A stretch of DNA of 64,000 bases from Piromyces finnis finn (GCA_002104945.1 MCFH01000025.1:372001-436000); one strand, 5' to 3'; shown: positions 1-29,312, counted from the first letter of the stretch. Numbers and translations: made by a program. Notes: generated from the letters alone by a model not told the origin.

Positions 1-429
1 AATTTTATATTTATTAATTCATTAATTCTAATACTATGAATATAACCATTTTAAACATAACATTTAACTTTTTTTAAAAAAATATTTTCAAAAAAAAAAA
101 AAAAAAAAAAAAAAAACATTTTATTTATAATAATTCAAATATAATATATACGGTTTAAAAAGCAGGCAAATTACTTTACTTGCCATGTTTCTATTTTTTT
201 TTTTTTTTTTTTTAAATTTTTTTATTTTTGCTATAATAAAATTCATACATTGAATGTTTTATTCATTTCAATTATTTTAGTTGATATATATACTTTAATA
301 TGAATATGTTAATAATTTTTATGGTATTTATATTACCAATTTATTTTTTTGTACTTACATTCATTTTATTTTATTTTTTCTTTATATAAAAAGACTTTAA
401 AATTTTGTTTAATAATACTTTTAAAGGCT

Positions 430-469
<40 letters not shown>

Positions 470-1002
470 AAGTGTATTACTATTATTATACTATTTGATA
501 TAAATACTATAGTTAAATATATTCCAATTTTATAAATTCCTTATATATTTCTTTCTTTCCTTTGAGATTTTACTCAACAAAGCAGAAATAATAAATGGAA
601 TTCTTTTATTATTTTTTATTTTTAATAATATTTACACTTCTCTATTTTTATTAAAAATAAAGAAAAGTTCTCAAAACATAAATTAATTGAAAATTTTAAA
701 ATTAATTAAATCAAATATAATTAAAAGTAGATGAATAAATAATTATCCTGGATTTTTGGCAGAACCATTTTTTTTATGTAGAATTTACATAAAATATATA
801 TTTTAAAAAAAATTTTTATCAACTATTTATTATCAATAATGATTATCAATTAATTTTTTTTTTTAATAACAATATTATTATTTTATTTTATCATTTTACA
901 TACATATCATATATACAAAGGATTGAATAAATAATTCATTTTTATATAAATGCTAATAATGAATTATGAATTATTATAAAGTGACACTATTTGTATTTAA
1001 AC

Positions 1003-3390
<2,388 letters not shown>

Positions 3391-3789
3391 ATACTAAAAA
3401 TATAGGTTTATTATAATTATTATTATATAAATATTTTATTATAATAACTTTTAAAATTATGCCAATAATATTTAATATAAGACTTTATACTTCTCTTTCT
3501 CCTTTATAAAATAATAATGTATAATTTTTATTATAAAAAAAAATAAAAATAAAGAAATAACTAGAATTAAGAAAATATAATTATTATTTTTAAAATTTAT
3601 TATTATTGTAGATTTTAATTAATTAGATTTTAATTAAGCAGTATATGTTGTATTATATTTTATTATTATTAGCTATAAAAAAATTGTACAATAAACTTGA
3701 AATTATTGTATATATTTCATTATATATAAAAATATTTATATATTTTTTTATATACTTTTTTAATAAATAAAAATAATTGAATAATAATA

Positions 3790-4056
3790 ATGGAAAACTA
3801 TAATCAATATAGTCAAAATAGCTTTAGAGGAAGAGGAAATGGAAGAGGAAGAGGAAGAGGTAGAGGAAGACCTTATTTTAATAGACAAAATAATTTTAAT
3901 CATTATAATAACAATTTCAATAATCAATTTAATAATAATAATAATAATATGAGAAATAGAAATTTCAATAAATACTCAAATAATAATAATGTAAATTCAC
4001 ATTTCGAATTTACTTGTGATGAATTTGTCAAGGATCCTTGGTTTGATTTAATTTAA
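3790..4056 (+). CDS. Small 88-aa RG-rich/Asn-rich protein with C-terminal FxxDPWxxL motif (possibly MPLKIP/TTDN1-like)
   Basis: Intronless ATG-TAA ORF with RGRGNGRGRGRGRGR, an N-rich spacer and a non-low-complexity tail EFTCDEFVKDPWFDLI. Head-to-head with ATE1, 400 bp apart. Confidence 0.6.
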   Translation: MENYNQYSQNSFRGRGNGRGRGRGRGRPYFNRQNNFNHYNNNFNNQFNNNNNNMRNRNFNKYSNNNNVNSHFEFTCDEFVKDPWFDLI

Positions 4057-5408
4057 ACATTATATCATTTAATGTAATTTTTTTTTTTTTTCATTATAAT
4101 GTACATTATAGCACAGTATTCATTATTTAATGAAAAGTATTATATATTTATTTGATGAACATTTATATTTCTAAAATAATATATTATTCATTTATAAAAT
4201 AAAAAAAAAAAACATAAATAAAATGTTTTTATTAAAAAGAGCATAATTAAATATATTTAATTAATATTACATACATTTTTAATATAAACAAATAAAACTA
4301 AAATTATAAAATGCAGAATCATTTACCATTCTTTTTTATAGTTATAACAAGCATTTATAAAATTTAAAAATATATGATATTACTATCAATAATAAAGTTA
4401 AATTGTTTTATAATATTTAGTAAGTAATTATCTATTCATAAAGAATTATATTTAAATAGAATATTATTATTATAATAATATTGTAAATTTATTTTCTTTT
4501 AATACCACCTATCCTCTTCACTTTTTTTTTTGTCTGTTTGTTTGTTTTTTAAATATTGAATCTATAATAATAAACTATGTTTTTATCATAGATTTAATAT
4601 ATTTAATAATAATTATATTATTCACAACTTTTTAATATATTACCTTGGAGAAAGAAAGAAAAAAGTGTTAATTTTGTATTATACCAAAATGTTTATGTAT
4701 TTATCAAGTTGCTATCAAAAATATTCATCAATTTCTTAAAATTTTTGATACTTTTATTATAATATTTGATATTAAAAATGAACCAAATAGAATAAAAAGT
4801 AATTTAATAAAGATTTTAATCATATATTTTTGAATCTGAACCAATTAAAAATTATTTTTAAAGTACAATTTTATAAATCTACATACTTAAAAACATTCTA
4901 TCTACAGTTATTGTTTTTTTAATTACTAATAAATAAACTTGTTTTGGTAAACCACTTTTTTTTTTTAATATTACAACTTTTTATTTATTTTTTATTTAAT
5001 TTTTTTTTTTTTTTTTCAAAATATTTATATAAATTTTTATTGATAATAAAAAAATATATTATGGATACGATGTATTTATCGATAATAATAAATATCTAAA
5101 ATATTAAAGCAAACTAAATAAAAAAAATTTAATCAATTTTTTTGTTGTTGTTATTTCTTTCAATAATAATTTAATTTGTTTAATATTTTATGCTGTATTA
5201 ATAGATATAAGGTATTATAAGTATTTTCAACAATTGATATGTTATAAAAATATTAATATTTTTTTAAAAAATAATGGATATGCTATACAAAAATGTAAAT
5301 TTAATTTTATAAATTATAAAAAAAATGACTTTACACTATTAATTCATTATTAATTGATATTATTTTCTTTTAATATTAGCCTTTTATTTAAAGTTTATCC
5401 GAAACATC

Positions 5409-6070
5409 TTATTGAACATTTGGATAAAGTGGCTGTCCATATGGAGAAGGAGTTGGGTAAGATCCTTGTGGTGGTGGTGGGTAGGCACCTTGTGGTGGTG
5501 GGTAAGATCCTTGTGGTGGTGGGTAAGAACCTTGTGGTGGTGGTGGATAAGTACCTTGTGGTGGGTATGATCCTTGTGGTTGAACATCAACAACTTCTGG
5601 TTCACTACCATATGGTTTACCAGTAACAGCTGGAGTTTCAGATGGAATTTCATTATTTTCGTTCTTTCCTTTCTTCTTTCCAGATGAAGCAAGGCTACAG
5701 CAACCCAAACAGCAGCAGATACAAGTGACAATAATAATTGTAATAATTATAACAATTATAATAATAATCCATTTTGCTATTTTACCGAGTCCTTTTTTAA
5801 CAGCTGTATAATTTTTAAAAAGGATAATATTAATATTTAAATTTTAATAAATTATTATAGTTATAGACTATTATGTTTATATATAATATATATTATTATA
5901 CATTGTTTTTATATTTTACCTTTACCACCACTACTAACAGAAACTTTTTTAGAATATTTAGCATTTGGATCATTTAACTTTAAATCAGTTATTTCATTAT
6001 CAATAGCTAAACTATTGACAATAGTTAATAAAGTAGCAAAGAGACTTAATAAGAATAATTTGCTATTCAT
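5409..6070 (-). CDS. Signal-peptide, single-TM, Cys-cluster, Pro/Gln/Tyr-repeat membrane protein (2 exons: 6070-5920, 5803-5409)
   Basis: Exon 1 is MNSKLFLLSLFATLLTIVNSLA (signal-peptide-like). A GT..AG intron 5919-5804 keeps frame. Exon 2 is KWIIIIIVIIITIIIVTCICCCLGCC followed by (P)PPQGSYP repeats, ending PNVQ*. Confidence 0.8.
5445..5580 (-). repeat. Coding tandem repeat of 21-24 bp units (PPQGxYP)
   Basis: Repeated ccttgtggtggtgg(tgg)gta units on the + strand, about 6 copies. Confidence 0.85.
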
Positions 6071-7066
6071 TTTTATTATTTATAATATTTTATTTTTGAT
6101 TTATTTTATATATATATATATAGAATTATTATCTACTTCAAATTAAATTGATTAGTTTTACTTTATTTTTTAATATATTTTTACTTTATTTTAAAAAAAA
6201 AAAGTTTTCAAAGTCATAAAAAATGGTACTTTTTTTCTTTCTTTATATAATATTTTTTTCCTACATAATATATTATATAATAATATTATAATATTAAAGT
6301 ATTACTATTGTTACTCCAATAAACCTAATATTATTTTTTTTTTTTAAATTTACTATTTAAAAATCGACAGCTTTTTCCAATAATTTATTATAACAAACTT
6401 TAATAAATAATAAAGTCTTAAAATTAATTTGTGTTCAAACCATAATTAATAATAAAATATACTATTTTTTAATAAAACAAATTAATTCATATAAAATTTT
6501 ATTATTAAAAATTAATTAAAATAATATATTCAAATAATTAATTGTAAGGTATATAATATATATTATATATATTATATTTGATTTCCACCAGGTTTTTTTA
6601 AAACGATCCAATTTTACAATAGCAAATGTATTTTGCAATATATTAGAATATATTCCAACCAATGGTAATGATAAAAATATTAATAACACTAAAGGAAGGA
6701 AAAGAAAAAAGATTAAAGTAATACCTACTATATAATATAATAATATATATATACTTTTATTCTTTAGAAAAAAAATATTTATAATAAAATGAATGAACAT
6801 TACTTTGTTAAAAAATATATATATATCTTTATTATATATATCTTTATATTTTCATGTGATAAAAATAATAAATATAATAATAATTAACTATTAAAATGAA
6901 TTAATAAAAAAAAATAATTAATTTGTAATAAAAAATAATTTATGAAAATTGTTTCTTTTTCAATTTAATTAAAATTAACCATAAACTTTTAATTTTCATT
7001 TATCAGCAATAATGTTCAAAAATGCTCAATAATATTTCTGTAGTAAAGTCTGTTGCTTTTTTCATT

Positions 7067-7139
7067 AAAAGTAATTAACAATAATGGTATATTTATTACG
7101 ATGGTATCAAAAGTAATTAACAATAATGGTATATTTATT
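7067..7139. repeat. Direct repeat, 31 bp x2, period 42 bp
   Basis: aaaagtaattaacaataatggtatatttatt at 7067-7097 and 7109-7139. Confidence 0.85.
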
Positions 7140-8347
7140 TCGATACTAATAAAACCAAAATCAATAATATCATATAATTTTTAATGGTTTCATTTAAATA
7201 ATATAGACATTTCTTCAATATCTATAATTTATGATATATATTCTATCCATTCCTACACAAAGACATAATAGTTTTAAAATAAATAGTAAAACATAAATGG
7301 ATTGAATTGGTTGATGATACAAAAGATATAATAATAAATTAATATAAAAAAACATCTTTGAAATTATCAAATAACATTTTTTTTAAAAAAAAAGAAAAGT
7401 TCATATATATTAATTGGAATCTTAAATAAATTATAATATGAAACGATATTAATTTTTAATATTCTTATTACAATATTCAAATATGTTAATTAACATTATT
7501 AACATTATTATAAAATAGAATAATTGAACTTTATAAAACTTTTAATCATTCGTTTAAATATAATGTTATTGATTTATTAAATGAATAATTCAAATATAAA
7601 TATATATTTATTATATATTTTGTTAACCTTTTTTAAAATTTTAAAATGAAAAGTTAGAAATTTTTTGTACATTAATGATCTTTGATAACATTAAAATCCT
7701 TGAAAATATATAATTATAATATTTAATATCGATAAAATCTTTGATATATTTTATATTTTATAATACTATTTATAATAGGACTCTTTAATAATAATAAAAA
7801 TCCTTGTTTTTACAATATAAATAAACAAGCAAGTAAAGTTTTTATGTACTGTTTTAATTACAAAAAAAAGTTACACAAATGTTACATTTTATTTTTATGT
7901 TTATAAAAAACTAATAAATAATAATATTAAAAATTATTATTTAATAATTTATTTAAATTTTAATAATATCATTATTTTTTATTATTATTAAGTAAAAAAA
8001 AAAAAAAAAAATATTTTGATATAAATTTAATTATAATATTTATTAATTAAAATATAAACAACAAAAAAATAAAAAATATAAAAAAAACAAATTTCAAAAT
8101 TTCAAATTTCAAATTATAATATGTTTTATGAAAAAAAAAAAAATTAAATTAGATTGGCTTCATTATATATAATAAAGTAATATATAAAAGTTTAAATATA
8201 TAAAGGTATCTTTTTATATATTAAAAGAAAAAATACTCGACAATAAAAATTAATAAATAATATTTTTTAAAATGTATTAAAAAAGTTTTTAATAATTCAA
8301 CAAAACTAAATAGCATTTAAATATATATATAAATATTAATAGTAAAA

Positions 8348-15156
<6,809 letters not shown>

Positions 15157-16310: not shown

Positions 16311-19300
16311 ATGGAAGTTGATAATGATAATAATACTCAAATTCCTTCAGTACCCCAAAAAATTAAAAAGGAAATTATTGAGGATAATGCATCAATGTCA
16401 AATAAAACCCCATCAACTATAAATATAAGTTCACCAACACCTACAACACCTTCTATTCAGAATATCCCATCTTCTTCAATACAAAATGTAAACAATGTAC
16501 CTATAAAATATTTGAGTGAAGAAAAAGATTCCTATGTAAATATTCTTGAAGAACAATTGGAAAAAGCTATTGAAAAAATAGACCAATTGGCTGTCGAAAA
16601 AAATGAATTAATTCAAAACTATCAAAATCAACATTCTTTAAATTCAGAAGATAACATCCAGATTTCTAATGAAATAAATAATTATCAAGTTCAAACTGCT
16701 GAAGAATTATCTTCAAAAATAAAAGATTTAGAACAACAATTAAAACAAGAAATTTCAATCAAAGAAGAAGGATTTAAAAATTATGAAAGTCGAATGGAAG
16801 AATTACAGAAAAATTATGATACCATTACAAAAAATAATGATATGAAATCAAAAGAAATTGATACATCCTTTAATGCTATAAAAGATATTCAAAAGAAATA
16901 CGAGCAGGAACTTTTGAAAAAAGAAAATTACAAACGTCAAATCAATAAAGTATATACAGATAATGTAAATTTAAAAAAGGAAAATGAAGAAAATAAAGAA
17001 AAAATAGAGGAAATGAAAAATGAAATTGAACAGCTCAATAAAAATATTGAGTCATTAAAAGAAAATATTAAAACGCTGAATGATTCAAATTCTGAAAATA
17101 AAGAAAAAGCAGAAAACAATGATGGTAATGGTGAAACGATACAACAATTAAAAGAAGTAAAACAGGAATATGAAAAAAAAATGGAATATCTTAAAAATAA
17201 ATATGAAACATTAAATAATTATCATGAAGGTTTCAAAACCAAAATCTATGGCCAACTCGATCAGCTTTTTCAAGATTATAAAAATAAAGAAGATAAGTAT
17301 AATAATGAAATTAATGAAAAAAATACAGAACTTTCCTCTGCTTTAACTAAGAATAAAGAATTGATAGAAGAAACAAAATCAAAAGATGACCAAATCAAAG
17401 AGTTAAATTCAAAAATTGAAAAACAAATTATTGATTATAATGATTTAAAAAAAGAACTTGATAAAAAAGAATCTGAATATAAGATAAAAGAACAAGAAAT
17501 TATAATGATAAATGCAAAATATAAAGAATTAATTGAAAATAAAAATAATACAGATAATGATTATGCCGGTAAATCTAAAAATGAAGAGGATAAACTAAAA
17601 GAGCTGGATATACTAGAAAAATATAAAAATGAATTAGAAAATAAAAATCATGACCTTAACACTACTCTCGATGAATTAAAGGAACTAAAACTACAGTTTG
17701 AAAAAAAGAATACTGAAATTAACGAATTATCAATACAAAATGATAAATTGAATGAATATTTAGAAGAATTGAATGAAATGGAAAGCAGTAACGAGAAATT
17801 AACAAAGGCATTGGAAGAATTAAAACAGTATAAAGAAACATCCTTTCAAAAAGAAAAGGAGATTATAAATTTAAATAAAAAGATTGAAGAGTTAAATAAA
17901 GTTAATGAAAGCATCAGTGAAAAAGATCAAGAAATAACAAAATTAAATCAAATGGTAAATGAAAAAGAAAAAAATCAAAGTGAATTTGATAAACAAACAG
18001 AACAAATTAAACAATTAAACGAAAAAATTGGAGAATTAAATACTTTTGAAATGAAATTTAAAGAAAAAGATCAAGAAGTAAGTTCACTTTATGATAAAAT
18101 CAAAGATTTAGAACAAGAGAAGATCCAGTTGCAAGGCGTCGAGAAGAATCTCAAGGATGAATTAGCCACATTAGCAAGTGAAAGTAATGTTAGAGACGAG
18201 GAAATTGAACGTCTTACAGAAGATAACAAAGCTTTAAGAAAAAAAGAGCAAGAATTTAAAATTAAAGAGGATGAATTTATTAGTCGCATTCAAGAATTAA
18301 AAGAAAATGAAATAAAGTATAGACAGGGATTCATGAGAAAAGAAGATTCACTACAGGTAACTATTAAAGAATTGAATAATAGGCTTCAAAGTCAAGAAAT
18401 TGCAAAGAGTAATGAATATAAAAATAAGGTTACTGAATTAAATAAAGTTATTAAAGATCTAGAAGCCGACAAAGAAGGATTTGCAAAAAAAGAAGAAGAA
18501 TTAAAAAATGATCTGGATAATAATTTGAAAATACTGAAAGAAAAAGAAGGATACTTCAAAGAATTAGAAGAAGACTATGAAAAAAAGAAAAAAGAACTAA
18601 CTAATCTAAGGGATAAGTCAGATAGAAATGATGAAGAGATTGAAAATTTAAAACAATTAAATAAAGATTTAAATATTAATAATGAGTCTTATAAAAAGGA
18701 AATTGGGGATTTGAAACAAAAATTCATGGCAATATCTGAAGATAATGTAATGAAAGAAAATAAAATATTAAGTTTAAATAAGAGTATAGCGACCAAAGAA
18801 GAGGAAGCAGAAAGTGCAAAATCTAATTTAGGTAAGAAAGAAAAAGAAGTGGAAAAAATAATAAATCAAATTGATCAAAAAAATCAAGAAAATGAACAGT
18901 TAAAGCAAAAATTAATAAATGTTGAAAAAGAATTAGAAATGGTAAAACAAGAATCTATTGATACTAAACAGAGATTCATTCATAAAGAAGATGAATGTAA
19001 AGAATTAGCCGAAACTGTAATACAACAAAATACTAAATTATTAGAAACAGATGAAAAAATAAAGAAATTAGAAGCAAGCATACTTTCTAAAGAGGAAGAC
19101 TATATTTATCTTAAAGAATGTTACACCAAAACAGAGCAATCACGGAACAAATTAAAAGAAGATAATAAAAGTCTACAAAATAAAATTAATGAATTAAATG
19201 AGAATAATTTTAAACAAGAAATAAAATTAAAGGAAGAAAAAAGGTATGAAAAACTTATTGAGGAATATAAACAAAAAGAATTTGAATACTGTGAAAAAAT

Positions 19301-22300
19301 TAAAGAATATGAAAAAGCAAGTGTTTCCTGTCTTTCAAAGCTTCATGAATCAACGATAAAAGAAAAAGAATATTTAAAGCAAATTGAAGAATTCAAAGAA
19401 AATTTAGAAACATGGGAAAAAGAAAATGATAACTATAAGAATGAGATAATGGTCTGTAAAAAAGAAAATGATGAGTATAAGGAAAGATTAAGATCCGCAG
19501 AAAAGAGAACGGATGATTATAGAGAAAAGTTAAAGATTTCAGAAGAGGAAGTAGATAATTATAAAATGAAATTGAGAACATCAGAAAATATAAGTGATGA
19601 ATACCGTGAAAAATTAAGATCCTCCGAAAATCGAATCGACGAATATAGAGAAAAATTAAGATCCTCTGAGAAAATGGTAGATGACTATAAAGAAAAGTTA
19701 GTCTCTACCGAAAAGCAATTTAAGAATAAATCAGAAGATTTCGAAAAAGAGATAGAACAATTAAGAAATAAATTGACAGAAGTAAAAAAAGAGAAAGAAG
19801 ATATTGAAAAAATATATAAAGATAATGAAAATAAGGATAATATTGTTATAATTAAAGGTAAATATTATTGATTTTATATATTATTTGTTAGTAGTATGAT
19901 GTATACGTATATTTCTATATTAATTAAATACCTCTGTTATAATTAACTATTAGATACTACAGAAAATAATTCCAGAATAATCTATGAAAAAGAAAAAATT
20001 AAAAAAGAAAATGAACAATTAAAGAATGTCATTGTACAAGTCAACGAAATGGTAGAAAATCTTAAACGTCAACTTATTGTTAAAGATAATGAAATCCAAA
20101 ACGAAAAAATAAAGCAAGAAAAAATACATCATGAAATGGAAGATAAAGAAATTGAACACAAAAAAATTGTTGATCAACACTTATTAGAAATAAAAATAAA
20201 AGAAGTGGAATTAAAGAATCTTATTATGAAATATACAGCATTGAAACAAGGAGAGAATGATGAGGAGAATGAGGTCAATGTAGATTTCATTAATATCAAA
20301 GAAGAGATTATGGGTATTAAAAAGAAGGCCGAAGAGGATGTTAAATTAGAACTCGAGTATGAAAAGAGTATCTATATTAAAAGAAAAGAACAAGAATATC
20401 ATAAAAAAAACGATGAACTTGAAAACAAAATGAAATTGGTAGAAATTAAGGCACAGGAAGAAATTGAAAACTTCAAAAATAAACTTAAAGAAGATGCCCT
20501 TAAAGAAATTGAAGAATTCAGAAAGAATTATGAAATTATTCAATTTAACGAAATTCGTCAAAAAGAATTAGAAATTGAAAATAGATACAAAGAAGCCATA
20601 TCTATTAAAAAGCAAGAATTAGATCAGCAAGAGAATAAATTATTAAAGATTAAAAAGCAAGAAATTGAAAGTGCTTTCAATCGTATCATACGAGCAAAAC
20701 AGCACGAATTTGAAGAAAAGTATAAAAGAAAAGTCATGAATCTTAAACTTTTAAACAACAATGATTCTCAAAATAATATTTCTGATGTCAATAAAAATAT
20801 TGTCAAAATCATTAATGATTTAAAAGACCAAATAAATTCCTTGACCAATAGTTTACAATTAGAAAAACAAATCAATGAAAATAACCATAAAAAAATTCAG
20901 ATTTTAGAAGAAGACCATACGAACAAAATACAAATAATACTTCAAAATCACTTTAATCACATTAATAACAATACTATCTTTAATAATAAAACACTCTCCC
21001 TCTTTGATAAAAATGAGTTAGAAAGAATATATAATAATATTAATACTCGATTCCTCGAAAATCTTGAAAGCGGTAATAGTTTTGGTCAAATGAATGAACA
21101 GTCATATTCAATAAAAAAACTAAATGAAATTTTAGCAGCCTTCCAGATCTATTTTTGGAAGTTGAAGGAAACTGTTCAAGACTACGAAAATAAAATAAAG
21201 GAAGTTAATTGGAGTAAAAAGATGAACGAAACAAGAAATGAAAGTGATGAAATTATTAGAAGAGAAAATAAGTTCAAATTATTAATGAGGGAAAAAGAAA
21301 GTGAATATTTAAGAATATTAACAGAATTAGAAATAGAAAATTATTTAAAGGAAAGTAATTTGATTGAAAATGGACTGTATATGAAGAACAACAGCTTTGA
21401 CAAGAATCATTATGAAAATCGTCTTAAAACACTTGAAGTACAATACAATAATTGTATGAATATTTTAGAAAGTGAAAAGAAAATATCTACTCGCCTATTG
21501 AATGAAAACAAAGAGCTTAGTCATCATTTAATGAAGGAACAAGAATCTTCCAAGGACATTGCTAAAACAACCCAAAAATACAAAGATTTATGTAATCAAT
21601 ATCGTCAAAAGTTAAGTGCCTTAGAAGATAAATACAAGAGCGAGTTAAAGAAACGTAGTAAGATTATTGAAAACTGTATACGTCAAATGAAGCAAAAACA
21701 AAGTAAACATAGTAAAACAAAAACTGCGGAATTTGTTAATATTGATGGGGTCGTCAATACCTACAAAAGAGACGATGATGGTAAAACAGAGGATGAATCA
21801 CGCCAAAAGTATCATTCTGATTTAACAACGGGTGACTTTGCCACATCCCTTTACACAGATCGATACACAAACAGAGAAAATGATGACGAAGAAGACGATA
21901 GTGATGAAAACAAAAGTAAAAGTGATTCAAGTGAAATTGAAGATGAAAAAGAATCAGACTCTCTTCAAACAGAGTCTTTTAATACTACTGTAAGAACCAC
22001 CGAAATGACCACTGAATTAAATGATTCTGAAGAAGAAGAAGACAATGGCAAATCAAACTCCAATGAAACTAGCAATAATAATGAAAAAGATGATGATGAT
22101 GATGAAAATAATGATGAAGAAAAGCATCATACTCGTGTATACAAAAGTTATCATGAATCATCCTCAGAAGAAGGTAATGATGATAATGATGATGATGATG
22201 ATGATGATGATAGCGATTCATATCAAAAAAAGAAAAGCAAAAAGGAAAAGAAAAAGGCACATAAAAAGAATAACAAAAAAAAGAGTAGTGGTCATGATGT

Positions 22301-24721
22301 AGAAAAAATAAAAGAAAAGAAGGAACATAAGAAATCAAAATCTAGTAAAAAAGAAAAGAAGAATGAGGACTCCAAAAAAAAGGATATGCCTAGTGAACCT
22401 TCCATTAGTAAAGAAAATATTATACCCAATGATGATAGTCAAAAGAAATATGTTTTGAGAAATAAAGATAATAAAAATCAAGTCTTAGAACTCTACGATT
22501 CTGATGATTTGGAATCTTCCGAAATTGAGGTTTCAGATAGTATAAAGGAAGAAATTAGATCATTGTTAGAAGATATACCCGAATTAAAGAGTAAATATCA
22601 AATTTTAAATAAAACAGGAGAAGGTATATTATATATTTTATAATTTTAAAAAATGAAAAAAAAATGAAAAAATAATTAAAAAAAAAAAAAAAAAGCAATA
22701 ATAGTAATAATAATAATAATAATAATTTTTAATTATTAGTTATTAGTAGTAGTTTTAGTAATTATAATAGTAGTAGTAAATTTTCATTTATTTTATTTAT
22801 TTCAATCTTTATAAATACACTCATTATTAATATATTTTATGGGTTTATTATTATCATAAACAGGAACCTTCAGTTCTGTATATAAAGCCTTACGTATTGA
22901 TGAAGAACGAAAGAGAAAGGAAAGAATAAAAAAGAAAAAAGAAAACAAGTATTATGCTAAACCGATTAAAAATAAAAAATACTATGCACTCAAACGTATT
23001 TATGCTACAAGTAGTCCACAACGTATTGAAAATGAAATTGGTATCCTTCATGACCTACGAAAAAAGAGTAATATTGTCTCAATTTACGGTTGTGTTCGTT
23101 ATGAAGATCAAGTTATCTTGGTTTTACCATACATCCAGCATAATGATTTCAGAGTATGTTGATGATATAAAGAAATAATTAATTATAATAATAATAAAAA
23201 TTTTTAATATAATAGTGTAAAATAAATTTCATATTTTTAATAGAATATTGTTATCTAATTAATATTTTATAATTTTTAAATATTTAAAAAAAAAAAAAAA
23301 AAAAAAAAGAATTATTTCAACATAATGACAATGAATGATATTCGTTTCTATATGATTTCAATTTTAACTGCCTTGAAACACTGTCATGAATTATATATTA
23401 TGCATCGAGATATTAAGCCAAGCAATTTCCTGTATGATGTTAAAAATAAAACAGGTGTATTGGTTGATTTTGGTTTAGCACAACGTATGGATGAAGCAAC
23501 GATTGCCGCATCTAAAACAGAAATGATGAATAATAAGCGTCCTCTAACGGAATTTAGTCATTCCAATTCCGAAACTTTCAATAAAAAGCAGAAAACAAAT
23601 AAATCCACATCAAAATCAGTAAAGTCAAAATCAAAAGAAGAAGATAGTAATTCGGATAGAGAAAATGAAGAATTTACCACAAATGAAAATAGATTTGTCC
23701 CTGACATTAATAATGAAATTCCAATTGATATACCCACCTACAATAATGGAAAAATTCATCCACTTAGTGTTATGGCCACCATGCCAAAATATGGTAAACC
23801 TGGTTATATAAAGAATGATGTTAGGTAATTTTTTTTTTTTTTTTTTTCATTTTACAATATATTTATTTATATATATGTATATATATATACTGAATAAATT
23901 AATTATACAAAAAAAATACTAATTTTTTTTTAATCCTAAAATATGATATTATTAGACCTGCTATAAGAGCTAATAGAGCAGGAACAAGAGGTTTTAGAGC
24001 TCCAGAAGTCCTATTTAAATGTGTTAATCAAACAGTTGGTAAGTGATCACCTTTTGTTTTTCCAAAAAAAAAAATAATAATAATAATAATAATTAAAATA
24101 ATATATATATTAAAATATATTTGATTATATGAATAAATAAATTTATGCATCAAAACATTTATTAATATATTTTAATGTATATTATGAATAAATAATTATA
24201 TAATAAATAGCTATTGATATATGGTCCGTTGGTGTAATTCTTCTCTGCATATTTACCCAACGTTTCCCATTCTTTAATTCTAATGATGACTATGAAGCCC
24301 TTCTTGAATTAGGATGTATTTTTGGTAAAAAAAAGATGAAATATGTTGCTTATGTTTTAGGTAAATAATCATTAATTATTAAATAATACTAATTTTTAAT
24401 TCACCATTGTAAAAAAAAAAAAAATAAAATAAAAAGCTAATTAATTTTTCTTTTAAAATAATAATAACAATAACATTTTTATATCATTTAGAACGAACTT
24501 ATGAAACAAATATTCCTTCTATTAAAGATAATTGTATATCATTCCAAGATTTATGTGGTAATTTAAATCCATCTAAACATATACCTAAAGAAGGATTTGA
24601 CTTCTTAAATCGTCTTTTAACATTAGATCCAAAAGCAAGAATTACGGCAAAAGATGCTCTTCATCATCCATTTTTAACACATTTTGATGACGAAGATTCA
24701 ACTAGCGAACATAGTAGTTAA
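16311..24721 (+). CDS. Predicted 2,494-aa protein: very long E/K-rich coiled coil, charged linker and C-terminal CDC7-family kinase (exons 16311-19857, 19954-22623, 22864-23153, 23310-23824, 23956-24038, 24211-24360, 24492-24721)
   Basis: The two giant ORFs (1186 aa and 864 aa) are joined in frame by a 96-nt GT..AG intron. The second ORF runs without a stop into the kinase N-lobe (YQILNKTGEG|TFSSVYKA). Exon lengths sum to 7,485 nt, a multiple of 3. Confidence 0.7.
19422..19715 (+). repeat. Coding repeat, 7 x 14 aa (42 bp) within the coiled coil
   Basis: ENDNYKNEIMVCKK / ENDEYKERLRSAEK / RTDDYREKLKISEE / EVDNYKMKLRTSEN / ISDEYREKLRSSEN / RIDEYREKLRSSEK / MVDDYKEKLVSTEK. Confidence 0.85.
22501..24721 (+). 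CDS. CDC7: CDC7 (DDK catalytic subunit) Ser/Thr kinase domain
   Basis: GEGTFSSVYKA, YALKRIYATSSPQRIENEI, HRDIKPSNFLY, VLVDFGLAQ, a long kinase insert, RANRAGTRGFRAPEVLFKC, DIWSVGVILL, FPFFNSNDDYEALLEL and RITAKDALHHPF are CDC7-specific signatures. Confidence 0.95.
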
Positions 24722-26603: not shown

Positions 26604-29312
26604 ATGGGAAACTCACAAAGTCATGGAAACGACTATCCAATGCCAAATTTCAATGAAAATGAATATGAACAATTAAAAACTATTATTGGTAATACTACCC
26701 AAAGTAGTATGAATGAATTCATTCCAATTTCAACTGAATTAATTAAAGTACATAAAAAATAAGAAAAAAAAAATTTTTTTTTTCTTTTATTATCATTTAA
26801 TTATTCTATATTCAATATAACATATAATTTAATGTATATAAATATAATAAATTTTAAATAATTATACCTTTTCTTTTAAATATAAAATAAAAACATTTTA
26901 TTACAACATTAAATAGGAAAAACTTCCAAATTTCACAGAAAGATTTAAAGTCACATTCTTCAACTTAGCTAAAGAAGAGGAAAAACTTTTAAATATTAAA
27001 TATAAAAATATTAAAAAAAGTAAAAAGAAGGCATTTGAAAAATCCCTTTCTTCTGTAAGTCTAACTTTAGAAACTTCAAACGAAATTTTATCTCGTAGTA
27101 CTTTACTCAGAATTATTGAAAGTTTATGTAAACCAAATAAAAGTGATCCTGAACACAAAATAATAAAGCGTTTCATTCAATTATACGCTAGTTCTTTTTC
27201 AAATGATAATGATAATAATAATAATAATGAACAAGAAAAAGTTGATACCAATAAATTTATACAGGAACTTACTAGTATTGCTTTAACTTATTATGTTGCT
27301 GCTGTTCCAAGAATTAAGACAGTTGAAGAAGATGGTGTTCAAAAAGAAATTATTAAAGAAGGACCACCACCAAAATTCATCGAAGCTTCCGATCGTATTG
27401 TTTCCTTTGTTTTAAGAGATATTAAAAAGGTTTCCTATAAAGAAGATCTTTCAAAACCAGTTACTTTTGATGATAATGAAGATGAAGAAAAAAATAAAAA
27501 AAATGAACCAGTTGTATTAAGTTGGGAAGAACTTATCACAAACTCAATACAATCATCAGTATTTAATTTATTATGGGAAATTGCTTTCTGTTCTGCTTTT
27601 ATTACTACACCAGTATTCAAAGTAAAGAAAAATATCCTATTTTTTATATATTTTCAATATTCAATAATTCAATTTATTTTATCAATCAAGAGTTCATTAT
27701 TTACTAAAATACTTTTTCATAATTTATACTGTTTATTATTTATTTTTTCTATTATTTTTTTTAAAAAAAAAATCTATATAATATTACCAAAATAATGTAT
27801 ATGATAATTGGAATAATCCAAATTTAATTAATCTATCATAGACCAAAAACTTAAAAAATTATCGTTTGAAAGCTATGACTAAACCAAGATTAAATCCAAA
27901 TAGATCACGTCTTTTAAAACCAGAAGACCTCTTTGTAATTGATTTATCTATTCCATCATTTCATATCAATACTGTATGGAATCAAATTTATGATAGTTCC
28001 AGTAGTGGTGAAAATTGGACTGTCTTTGCTAATTGTATTGAAGATCAAGGTTCAACTATTATTATTGTTAAAGGTATTTAATATTCTTATTAAAATAGTA
28101 TCATATTATATTTTCTTTATCTTTATATATAAAAGAAAATATGAAATATATATATATATATATATATATATTAATAACAAAATTAAATTCATTGTAATAT
28201 TAAATTTAAATAGATAAGGATGATAATGTTTTTGGTGGATTTGCATCAAATGTATGTACTTAAAACAATAATTAATATAAAGAGTAAATATATATATTTA
28301 TTTAATGAAATTTTATTTATTTTATTTTATAATATTTAAACTATGAAGGAATGGGATCACAAACCAAAATTCTATGGTGATAATCGTTCGTTCTTATTTA
28401 CATTAAGACCAGAAATAAATATCTATAAGGCTACTGATATTAATGTAATTATAAAATATATATATTAAAGTAATAAATTTAAGACCACGCAAATTTAATT
28501 CCTCCGTTTTTTTAAAAAAAAAATAATAAAATTATTAAATGAATATAGGATCATTATCAATACTTTAATGATCAACAACAATCATTGCCAAACGGTTTAG
28601 TAAGTATAATTATTTGAAATATATATAGTAAATATAAATATAGTAAAAATAAAATTAATTTAAATGCTATAACTATATATTAGGGTATGGGTGGTCAATT
28701 CGATTATTTTGGTTTCTTTATTAGCTCTGACTTTATTCATGGTCATTCAAAAGGCGTTTCCACAACTTACAATAATCCAAATTTAAGTAGTAAACAAGAA
28801 TTTGAATTAGAAGCTGTAGAAGCTTGGTTAGTTAAAGAAAAAGAAAGAGATGATCGTTTAATTGACGACAGAAAGAAAAAACAAGGATCTGTTATGAGTA
28901 GAATGGGTAATTGTCTTTTTTATATTTTAATTATACTTATTATGATATGATAAAATATAAAAATCATAAAAGAATATATTAATAATATAAACTTTTTCTC
29001 TATATATATTGTTTTAATATTATTTACTATTTTATTTTATGATTTTACAGAGGATATGACTTTCTTAGAAATGTCTGGTATTAAGGTAAATAATAAGCAA
29101 AAAATCAATATATTATTATCACTCTTTTAATATTAATGTTAATTCAAAAATATATATAATACATATATATTATATATTTTTTATATATGTATTTTCCTTT
29201 TTATAAAAATATTATTTTAAATTATTAATAGATGTATAGTAAAGATATTAAAGCTCAACCAAATGCTGATGATGATTATTGGAAGGAGTCAGAATTTGAA
29301 TCTAATTACTAA
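26604..29312 (+). CDS. N-myristoylated TLDc-domain protein (MEAK7/TLDC1- or Rtc5-like), multi-exon
   Basis: Starts MGNSQS. TLDc motifs WNQIYDSSSSGENW, QGSTIIIVKDKDDNVFGGFAS, FYGDNRSFLFTLRP, GMGGQFDYFGFFISSDF and FELEAVEAW. C-terminus FLEMSGIKMYS...ESNY*. Confidence 0.88.

Follow-up and report, generated by a model that had tools for sequence, protein, structure and literature searches.

The Dbf4-dependent kinase (DDK), whose catalytic subunit is CDC7, is the universal and heavily studied trigger of origin firing, and in the known systems it is Dbf4 that supplies the targeting. To our knowledge, the catalytic subunit is small in every system studied, and Dbf4 decides where DDK acts. CDC7 of yeast and human starts about 10-40 residues before the pre-kinase helix, whereas the protein described here starts about 2,050 residues before it. 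It is encoded by Piromyces finnis in a stretch of 64,000 nucleotides (nt) (GCA_002104945.1 MCFH01000025.1:372001-436000), hereafter the window, along which all positions are counted; the gene lies on its + strand. We put at roughly 80% the probability that this is one gene of seven exons encoding a protein of 2,494 amino acids (aa), of which the last ~450 residues are the sole CDC7 and the first ~2,050 a lineage-specific addition composed of a head, a coiled coil, a helical region and a linker. The architecture itself is, judged by the loci that were compared, real and clade-wide in gut fungi, and it is seen in no other CDC7 found in this analysis.

The gene occupies positions 16311-24721 on the + strand. 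Its seven exons sum to 7,485 nt, corresponding to 2,494 aa plus the stop codon, and every intron has GT..AG ends. The protein length is arithmetic from the exon coordinates, and all searches and folds were run exon by exon. Upstream of the ATG of exon 1 lies an AT-rich spacer of about 1.5 kb with 10-13% GC. The parts of the gene are the following, with a slash at splice borders:

Exon 1, 16311-19857, + strand: ATG start, 1,182 codons plus 1 nt, ending at the consensus donor AAG/GTAAAT.
Intron 1, 19858-19953, + strand: 96 nt, phase 1, AAG/GTAAAT...TTAG; holds stops, and its removal joins exons 1 and 2 in phase.
Exon 2, 19954-22623, + strand: 889 whole codons; the end reads ..YQILNKTGE plus one G.
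Exon 2, helical part (exon aa 1-584), 19954-21707, + strand: predicted long helices, weak heptads, several invariant motifs.
Exon 2, linker (exon aa 585-859), 21708-22532, + strand: predicted to be disordered; acidic, then basic.
Exon 2, end, 22533-22623, + strand: CDC7 pre-kinase helix, strand beta-1 and first half of the Gly-rich loop (..KTGEG).
Intron 2, 22624-22863, + strand: 240 nt, phase 1; divides the Gly-rich loop, GEG/TFS.
Exon 3, 22864-23153, + strand: starts (G)TFSSVYKA (GA-ACC-TTC..); second half of the Gly-rich loop, catalytic Lys (ALKRI), alpha-C Glu; Pfam Pkinase.
Exon 4, 23310-23824, + strand: HRDIKPSN catalytic loop, DFG and the long CDC7-type kinase insert; Pfam Pkinase at 2e-15.
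Exon 5, 23956-24038, + strand: end of the activation segment, RAGTRGFRAPE.
Exon 6, 24211-24360, + strand: DIWSVG, C-lobe; Pfam Pkinase.
Exon 7, 24492-24721, + strand: end of the C-lobe, TAA stop at 24719-24721; Pfam Pkinase.

A chance origin of the two long open frames is excluded. At the base composition of this region (A 0.49-0.52, T 0.24), the stop probability is about 0.10 per codon, which gives a chance of an open frame of log10 P ~ -55 for exon 1 (1,182 codons) and ~ -38 for exon 2 (~890 codons). The other five frames contain 40-206 stops each overall, and across exon 1 they contain 47-206 compared to none in the coding frame. A preliminary description of this DNA, which was made from the sequence alone, had called such a frame very unlikely by chance, and these values bear it out. 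It had also predicted the 2,494-aa protein, a length that is returned by the exon coordinates, and had seen a stop-free frame of ~860 codons that enters the CDC7 Gly-rich loop and is spliced in frame to a 1,182-codon exon. The former frame was found with 889 whole codons and the loop split as GEG/TFS, and the splice corresponds to the predicted phase-1 intron of 96 nt, to which a homologous intron exists in all five genomic loci.

The kinase at the end of this protein is, according to its matches, a genuine CDC7 and the sole copy in this genome. Exon 4 alone has human CDC7 (4f99) as its best match among solved structures (9.5e-13). The orthologous kinase region of the gut-fungal protein P0003 (residues 880-1367), to which the kinase exons of the window are 68-96% identical, matches yeast Cdc7 at 2.7e-72 and human CDC7 at 6.7e-62, compared to 2e-36 for CK2 as the next family. 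The stretch of P0003 that is orthologous to the end of exon 2 aligns with yeast Cdc7 from residue 9, i.e., from the pre-kinase helix. Since residue 9 of yeast Cdc7 pairs with the helix at the end of exon 2, an ordinary CDC7 begins about 2,050 residues into the protein of the window. All catalytic motifs (GEG/TFS, ALKRI, IENE, HRDIKPSN, DFG, APE, DIWS) are found in the window exons. DFG and APE are 134 residues apart, a spacing that reflects the CDC7-type insert, and the match to yeast Cdc7 splits into two stretches that flank this insert. A protein kinase domain was assigned by Pfam to exons 3, 4, 6 and 7, with no Pfam domain above threshold on exons 1 and 2. No second CDC7-like locus was found in the genome (56.46 Mb, 232 contigs), where the next match reached only 7e-6, and the same genome holds no paralogue of either long exon, i.e., no stand-alone gene for the rod. 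A Dbf4 gene is present on the - strand of contig C179 (199198-200180), with matches to Dfp1_Him1_M (51.7 bits) and zf-DBF (31.1 and 26.2 bits) that are all above the cut-off. Motif M precedes zf-DBF on the same strand, as expected, and an intron splits zf-DBF. The open frames of 372 and 714 aa around these motifs suggest a large Dbf4.

The same arrangement was found in other gut fungi. A word search with exon 2 added six proteins to its family. Three of them continue into the kinase, and the Orpinomyces model P0005 also spans the junction of exons 2 and 3. The word search with exon 1 gave no match at E <= 1e-5; low-complexity candidates probably swamped it, and orthologous open reading frames (ORFs) do exist. 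Both long frames and the first intron recur at four more genomic loci, which belong to other lineages of gut fungi. On the contigs of relatives (L006-L011, 65-71% identical, as well as L012 and L013) a short intron at this same codon lies between the two long frames, the second of which ends in ..KTGEG/GT, as does exon 2 of the window. The whole locus is contained in L016 (GCA_002104975.1, MCOG01000229.1), presumably from Neocallimastix californiae, with a frame of 1,382 aa, an intron of 241 nt, a frame of 892 aa and the kinase exons. It has the same neighbors as in the window, RAB3GAP2 upstream and a gene with a TLD domain downstream, and the locus is therefore syntenic across genera. In the window, RAB3GAP2 lies at 10153-14804 (several exons, + strand) and the TLD-domain gene at 28687-28947. 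Two further observations concern the introns. L016 has an extra intron (L016:11165-11282) within the equivalent of exon 3 of the window, the other kinase intron positions being common to both. Moreover, in the L006 group, which represents the closest relative, intron 2 has a poly-T run with a minimum length of 70-110 nt (L006:9280-9363), at which six independent metagenome assemblies (L006-L011) end, and intron 2 of the window holds an A-rich stretch (22636-22676).

Exon 1 is 44-67% identical to its counterparts in four other lineages. The homolog of intron 1 measures 96, 143, 153, 241 and 241 nt in the five genomic loci, and in all five the donor and the first acceptor join the frames in phase, the offset between the two long frames shifting in each locus to match the length of the intron. 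These data bear directly on the view that there are two adjacent genes, one of which is exon 1 as a 1,186-aa coiled-coil protein (stop at 19869-19871) and the other a gene of ~1,310 aa from the ATG at 20049, with "intron 1" as intergenic spacer. Each frame indeed has its own ATG, the unspliced exon 1 has its own stop, and gene callers of the bacterial type split the frames on every genomic contig. However, the spacer would be only 96-241 nt long and would carry a conserved consensus donor at the same codon, and its removal restores the frame in five of five loci, including three in which its length is not divisible by three. As the contigs described below also cross this junction in frame without the spacer, we regard two separate genes as very improbable. 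An artefact, either from misjoined unrelated genes or from a pseudogene, is effectively refuted. An AT-rich, low-complexity locus can mislead assemblers, and no evidence for such an error was found; order and frames are shared by assemblies made independently from at least nine samples and by a second reference genome, which also has these flanking genes, the frames are intact, and the ratio of nonsynonymous to synonymous substitution rates (dN/dS) is well below 1. The fusion is, on the present comparison, conserved in both sampled gut-fungal clades and thus predates their split.

A further indication of a continuous long product comes from contigs that resemble mRNA. In four Joint Genome Institute (JGI) samples, all from one relative, contigs of 7.6-8.0 kb (L004, L005, L017, L018) were found without introns at the splice sites of the window. 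The JGI sample numbers are 3300030640, 3300037678, 3300037693 and 3300037700. All seven exons of the window match these contigs in order, with nothing or exactly one split codon between them. The junction of exons 2 and 3 is represented by exactly one split codon, and in L004 and L017 the site of intron 1 is read through in frame; identity to this lineage is 92% in exon 3 and 96% in exon 5. L017 (8,021 nt) has a single ORF (65-8011) of 2,648 aa that extends from the coil to the kinase, with the kinase domain at 2204-2370 and beyond, and in-frame stops are present in its 64-nt leader. Since these contigs are without introns, yet their lineage belongs to the clade of the intron-bearing L016, processed mRNA is the simplest reading of their origin. 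The preliminary description had held that a giant helical N-terminus and CDC7 share one frame, a view that now has five genomic loci and one contig with a complete 2,648-aa ORF behind it. It had also named what would speak against this, namely that orthologs show the two parts as separate genes or that the junction is an assembly artefact; the orthologous loci instead keep the junction in frame, as does the single ORF of the relative.

The whole N-terminal extension is, to judge from substitution rates, under purifying selection. In comparison with two relatives, and with ratios that are approximate as dS is near saturation, dN/dS is 0.20 in exon 1, 0.07-0.12 in the helical part of exon 2, 0.19-0.20 in the linker and 0.03-0.05 in the pre-kinase helix. 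The frame of the linker is open in every lineage compared, and its dN/dS shows that it is translated in this frame and constrained. It enters the CDC7 pre-kinase helix without a stop and without a conserved start codon: the distance from the last Met to the Gly-rich loop is 75, 305, 205, 91 and 50 aa in five lineages (75 in the window), and as these positions differ, there is no conserved internal start.

This is relevant to a second view of the locus, according to which the long mRNA exists but most CDC7 is a short kinase that is made from an internal promoter or start in exon 2, whereas the rod is mostly made on its own, for instance from transcripts terminating in intron 2. The Met of the window 75 aa before the Gly-rich loop would suit such a start, as would the public N. 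californiae model P0007 (NCBI/JGI, 489 aa), which starts at an in-frame ATG (L016:10001), 615 codons into the frame of exon 2. However, the position of an internal Met is not conserved (50-305 aa upstream), and an open linker of 275 aa under purifying selection in every lineage would be needless in a 5' leader or in a tail of the coil only. Moreover, P0007 splices out a part of the linker that the mRNA-like contigs retain, and upstream of it L016:3790-10000 is a conserved open frame of ~6.2 kb without an annotated gene. P0007 therefore looks truncated, with the long form missing from that annotation. A further point that could favor a short kinase is the frame break in L004 and L005, which would leave an ORF of 1,367 aa comprising exon 2 and the kinase. 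These contigs have ten A residues (L004:3430-3439, L005:3311-3320) where L017 (3755-3763) and also L018 have nine, and apart from the extra A they show no mismatch to L017 in 7,696 nt. The extra A explains why the gene caller split L004 and L005 into ORFs of 1,147 and 1,367 aa. A true gene boundary or a recoding site at this position was considered and rejected, as L017 and L018 are otherwise identical with nine A residues and L017 is a complete single ORF. The variant could be an assembly or sequencing error or due to slippage in the A-run. L018 has a second indel of the homopolymer type near 1037-1079. Taken together, a locus with two main products seems unlikely to us, and we prefer one gene with one long product.

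For the species of the window itself, three sequencing runs of the same organism hold 0.87, 0.87 and 0.86 of the words sampled from the stretch. If only the seven exons were present, 0.868 would be expected, which is the proportion of 31-mers that lie wholly within them. This share fits a fully spliced full-length mRNA, for which it is weak evidence.

The N-terminus is, in the structure and heptad predictions, a composite of a disordered head, a coiled coil of ~1,100 aa, a helical region of ~585 aa with weak heptads and a disordered acidic/basic linker of ~275 aa. AlphaFold2 was run on family alignments, and the resulting models are monomers with rods of low confidence (predicted template modeling score 0.18-0.24). 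For exon 1, residues 1-71 are predicted to be disordered, forming a head of 71 aa that is rich in S, T, P and N, and residues 72-1171 to form a nearly continuous helix. For exon 2, helices are predicted over residues 2-584 and the pre-kinase helices at 861-887, whereas the predicted local distance difference test stays below 50 over 582-859. The long helical rod predicted in this way takes up roughly the first 1,700 residues of the protein. In the heptad test, exon 1 has an a/d excess of 0.62 in the best register compared to 0.36 when shuffled, and 45% of its residues exceed the shuffled 99th percentile. The signal is weak in residues 1-584 of exon 2 (0.43 compared to 0.37 shuffled), a part which contains invariant columns and motifs across seven aligned sequences. 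Thus, of the coiled coil of ~2,000 aa that had been proposed at first, the ~1,100 aa of exon 1 with their strong heptads hold up, whereas coiled-coil and structure prediction give weak heptads for the helical part of exon 2 and disorder for the 275-aa linker. The end of exon 1 (19460-19720) contains about six tandem copies of a unit of 14-15 residues of the type ..D-[DE]-Y-[RK]-E-K-L-[RK]-S-S-E..; the copy number varies between lineages, and the array is shorter in L005 and L012. The preliminary description had likened the scaffold to a myosin tail or to centrosomin. No model of a named scaffold family (myosin tail, centrosomin/CM1, intermediate filament, SMC) was matched above its curated threshold: in Pfam, exon 1 gave only sub-threshold matches (Filament, Fez1, ATG16) and exon 2 none. 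A search of the ESM Atlas with residues 270-640 of exon 2 returned only generic coiled-coil neighbors (0.90-0.92) with few shared features.

The module seems to be confined to gut fungi. When 1.84 billion representative proteins were searched with a profile of the exon 2 family, only four matched, all of them gut-fungal, and the rod is, on this evidence, a large, constrained and lineage-restricted addition without detectable relatives outside this group. A search restricted to CDC7 lengths of 750-2,400 aa yielded numerous fungal sequences with 750-1,200 aa (Mortierellomycota, Kickxellales, Kwoniella, rusts). The statement of the preliminary description that CDC7 normally has 500-600 aa is therefore too narrow for fungi, but none of these longer proteins carries the rod, and P0003 is the only one of the matches that is gut-fungal or has the rod module. 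Unrelated Pfam domains occur in a few CDC7 models of 1,600-2,200 aa, which may be merged genes. The length variation of fungal CDC7 looks under-described, and in our literature searches we came across no account of a CDC7 from gut fungi that is long or bears a coiled coil.

As to the function of the rod, long heptad coiled coils usually dimerise in parallel. The rod would accordingly be expected to form a parallel dimer of more than 150 nm in length (~0.15 nm per residue over ~1,100 residues), which would hold two kinase heads on flexible leashes of ~275 aa at the end of the filament. Its most likely role would be to set where in the nucleus DDK sits or how far it reaches, with Dbf4 presumably still activating the kinase. 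The centriole or basal body, the nuclear envelope and chromatin, which the preliminary description had suggested, are speculative anchors. Candidate docking sites are the invariant motifs of exon 2 and those conserved where the rod begins, with K-D-S-Y-V-N-I-L-E-E-Q-L-E-K as the conserved N-terminal motif.

Several points weigh against our reading of the locus. The mRNA origin of L004, L005, L017 and L018 was deduced from their lack of seven introns and from ends that coincide with those of the gene, not from sample records, and in two of the four (L004, L005) the extra A breaks the frame. For P. finnis, the splicing of introns 1 and 2 is assumed from homology and the word share, the latter of which could also result if AT-rich introns were lost from assemblies of DNA, and the position at which the transcript starts is likewise a prediction. 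If the internal ATG of P0007 is backed by transcripts, a short isoform may exist. Neither Pfam nor the exon 2 profile nor the ESM Atlas provided a homolog or a named domain that gives the rod a function, and we infer dimerisation, tethering and Dbf4 dependence.

A more far-reaching idea, which we consider doubtful, is that in the Neocallimastigomycota the free DDK was replaced clade-wide by a constitutively dimeric, filament-anchored DDK. The rod of more than 150 nm would then anchor the only CDC7 at a landmark of the nucleus, for instance the spindle pole or a microtubule-organizing center of the nuclear envelope, a center associated with the kinetosome, or a chromatin domain, and origin firing would be gated in space. 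If true, this could serve rapid synchronous nuclear cycles in the multinucleate sporangium before zoospore cleavage. A phylum whose only CDC7 appears to be welded to a helical module of ~2,000 residues would be a natural experiment in DDK targeting. Moreover, since at least one reference annotation (N. californiae) probably truncates the protein, surveys of kinomes or replication factors in early-diverging fungi would miss the long CDC7.

Among the systems with which this gene can be compared, the CDC7 locus of N. californiae (P0007) is orthologous, agrees in its kinase exons and likewise has RAB3GAP2 and a TLD gene as neighbors. The long CDC7s of other fungi, which reach 900-1,200 aa in Mortierellomycota, ~830 aa in Kickxellales and 1,600-1,730 aa in some Microbotryomycetes, are likewise CDC7 orthologs that exceed 500-600 aa. 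However, none of them matched the exon 2 profile, and several of the longest have unrelated Pfam domains and may be merged models. A similar design is known from ROCK, MRCK/DMPK and citron kinase, in which a long parallel coiled coil bears a catalytic head at its end and determines how far this head is from an anchor, and the working principle may be alike by analogy. These belong to the AGC kinases and carry the kinase N-terminally, and they have no sequence relation to the gut-fungal rod. With the Cdc7/Hsk1-Dbf4 complex of yeast and animals (7p5z, 4f99, 6ya6) the gut-fungal system shares the orthologous kinase domain, the pre-kinase helix, the catalytic motifs, the long insert between DFG and APE and a Dbf4 gene. 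It differs from the known DDK in that the catalytic subunit itself bears a very large extra module.

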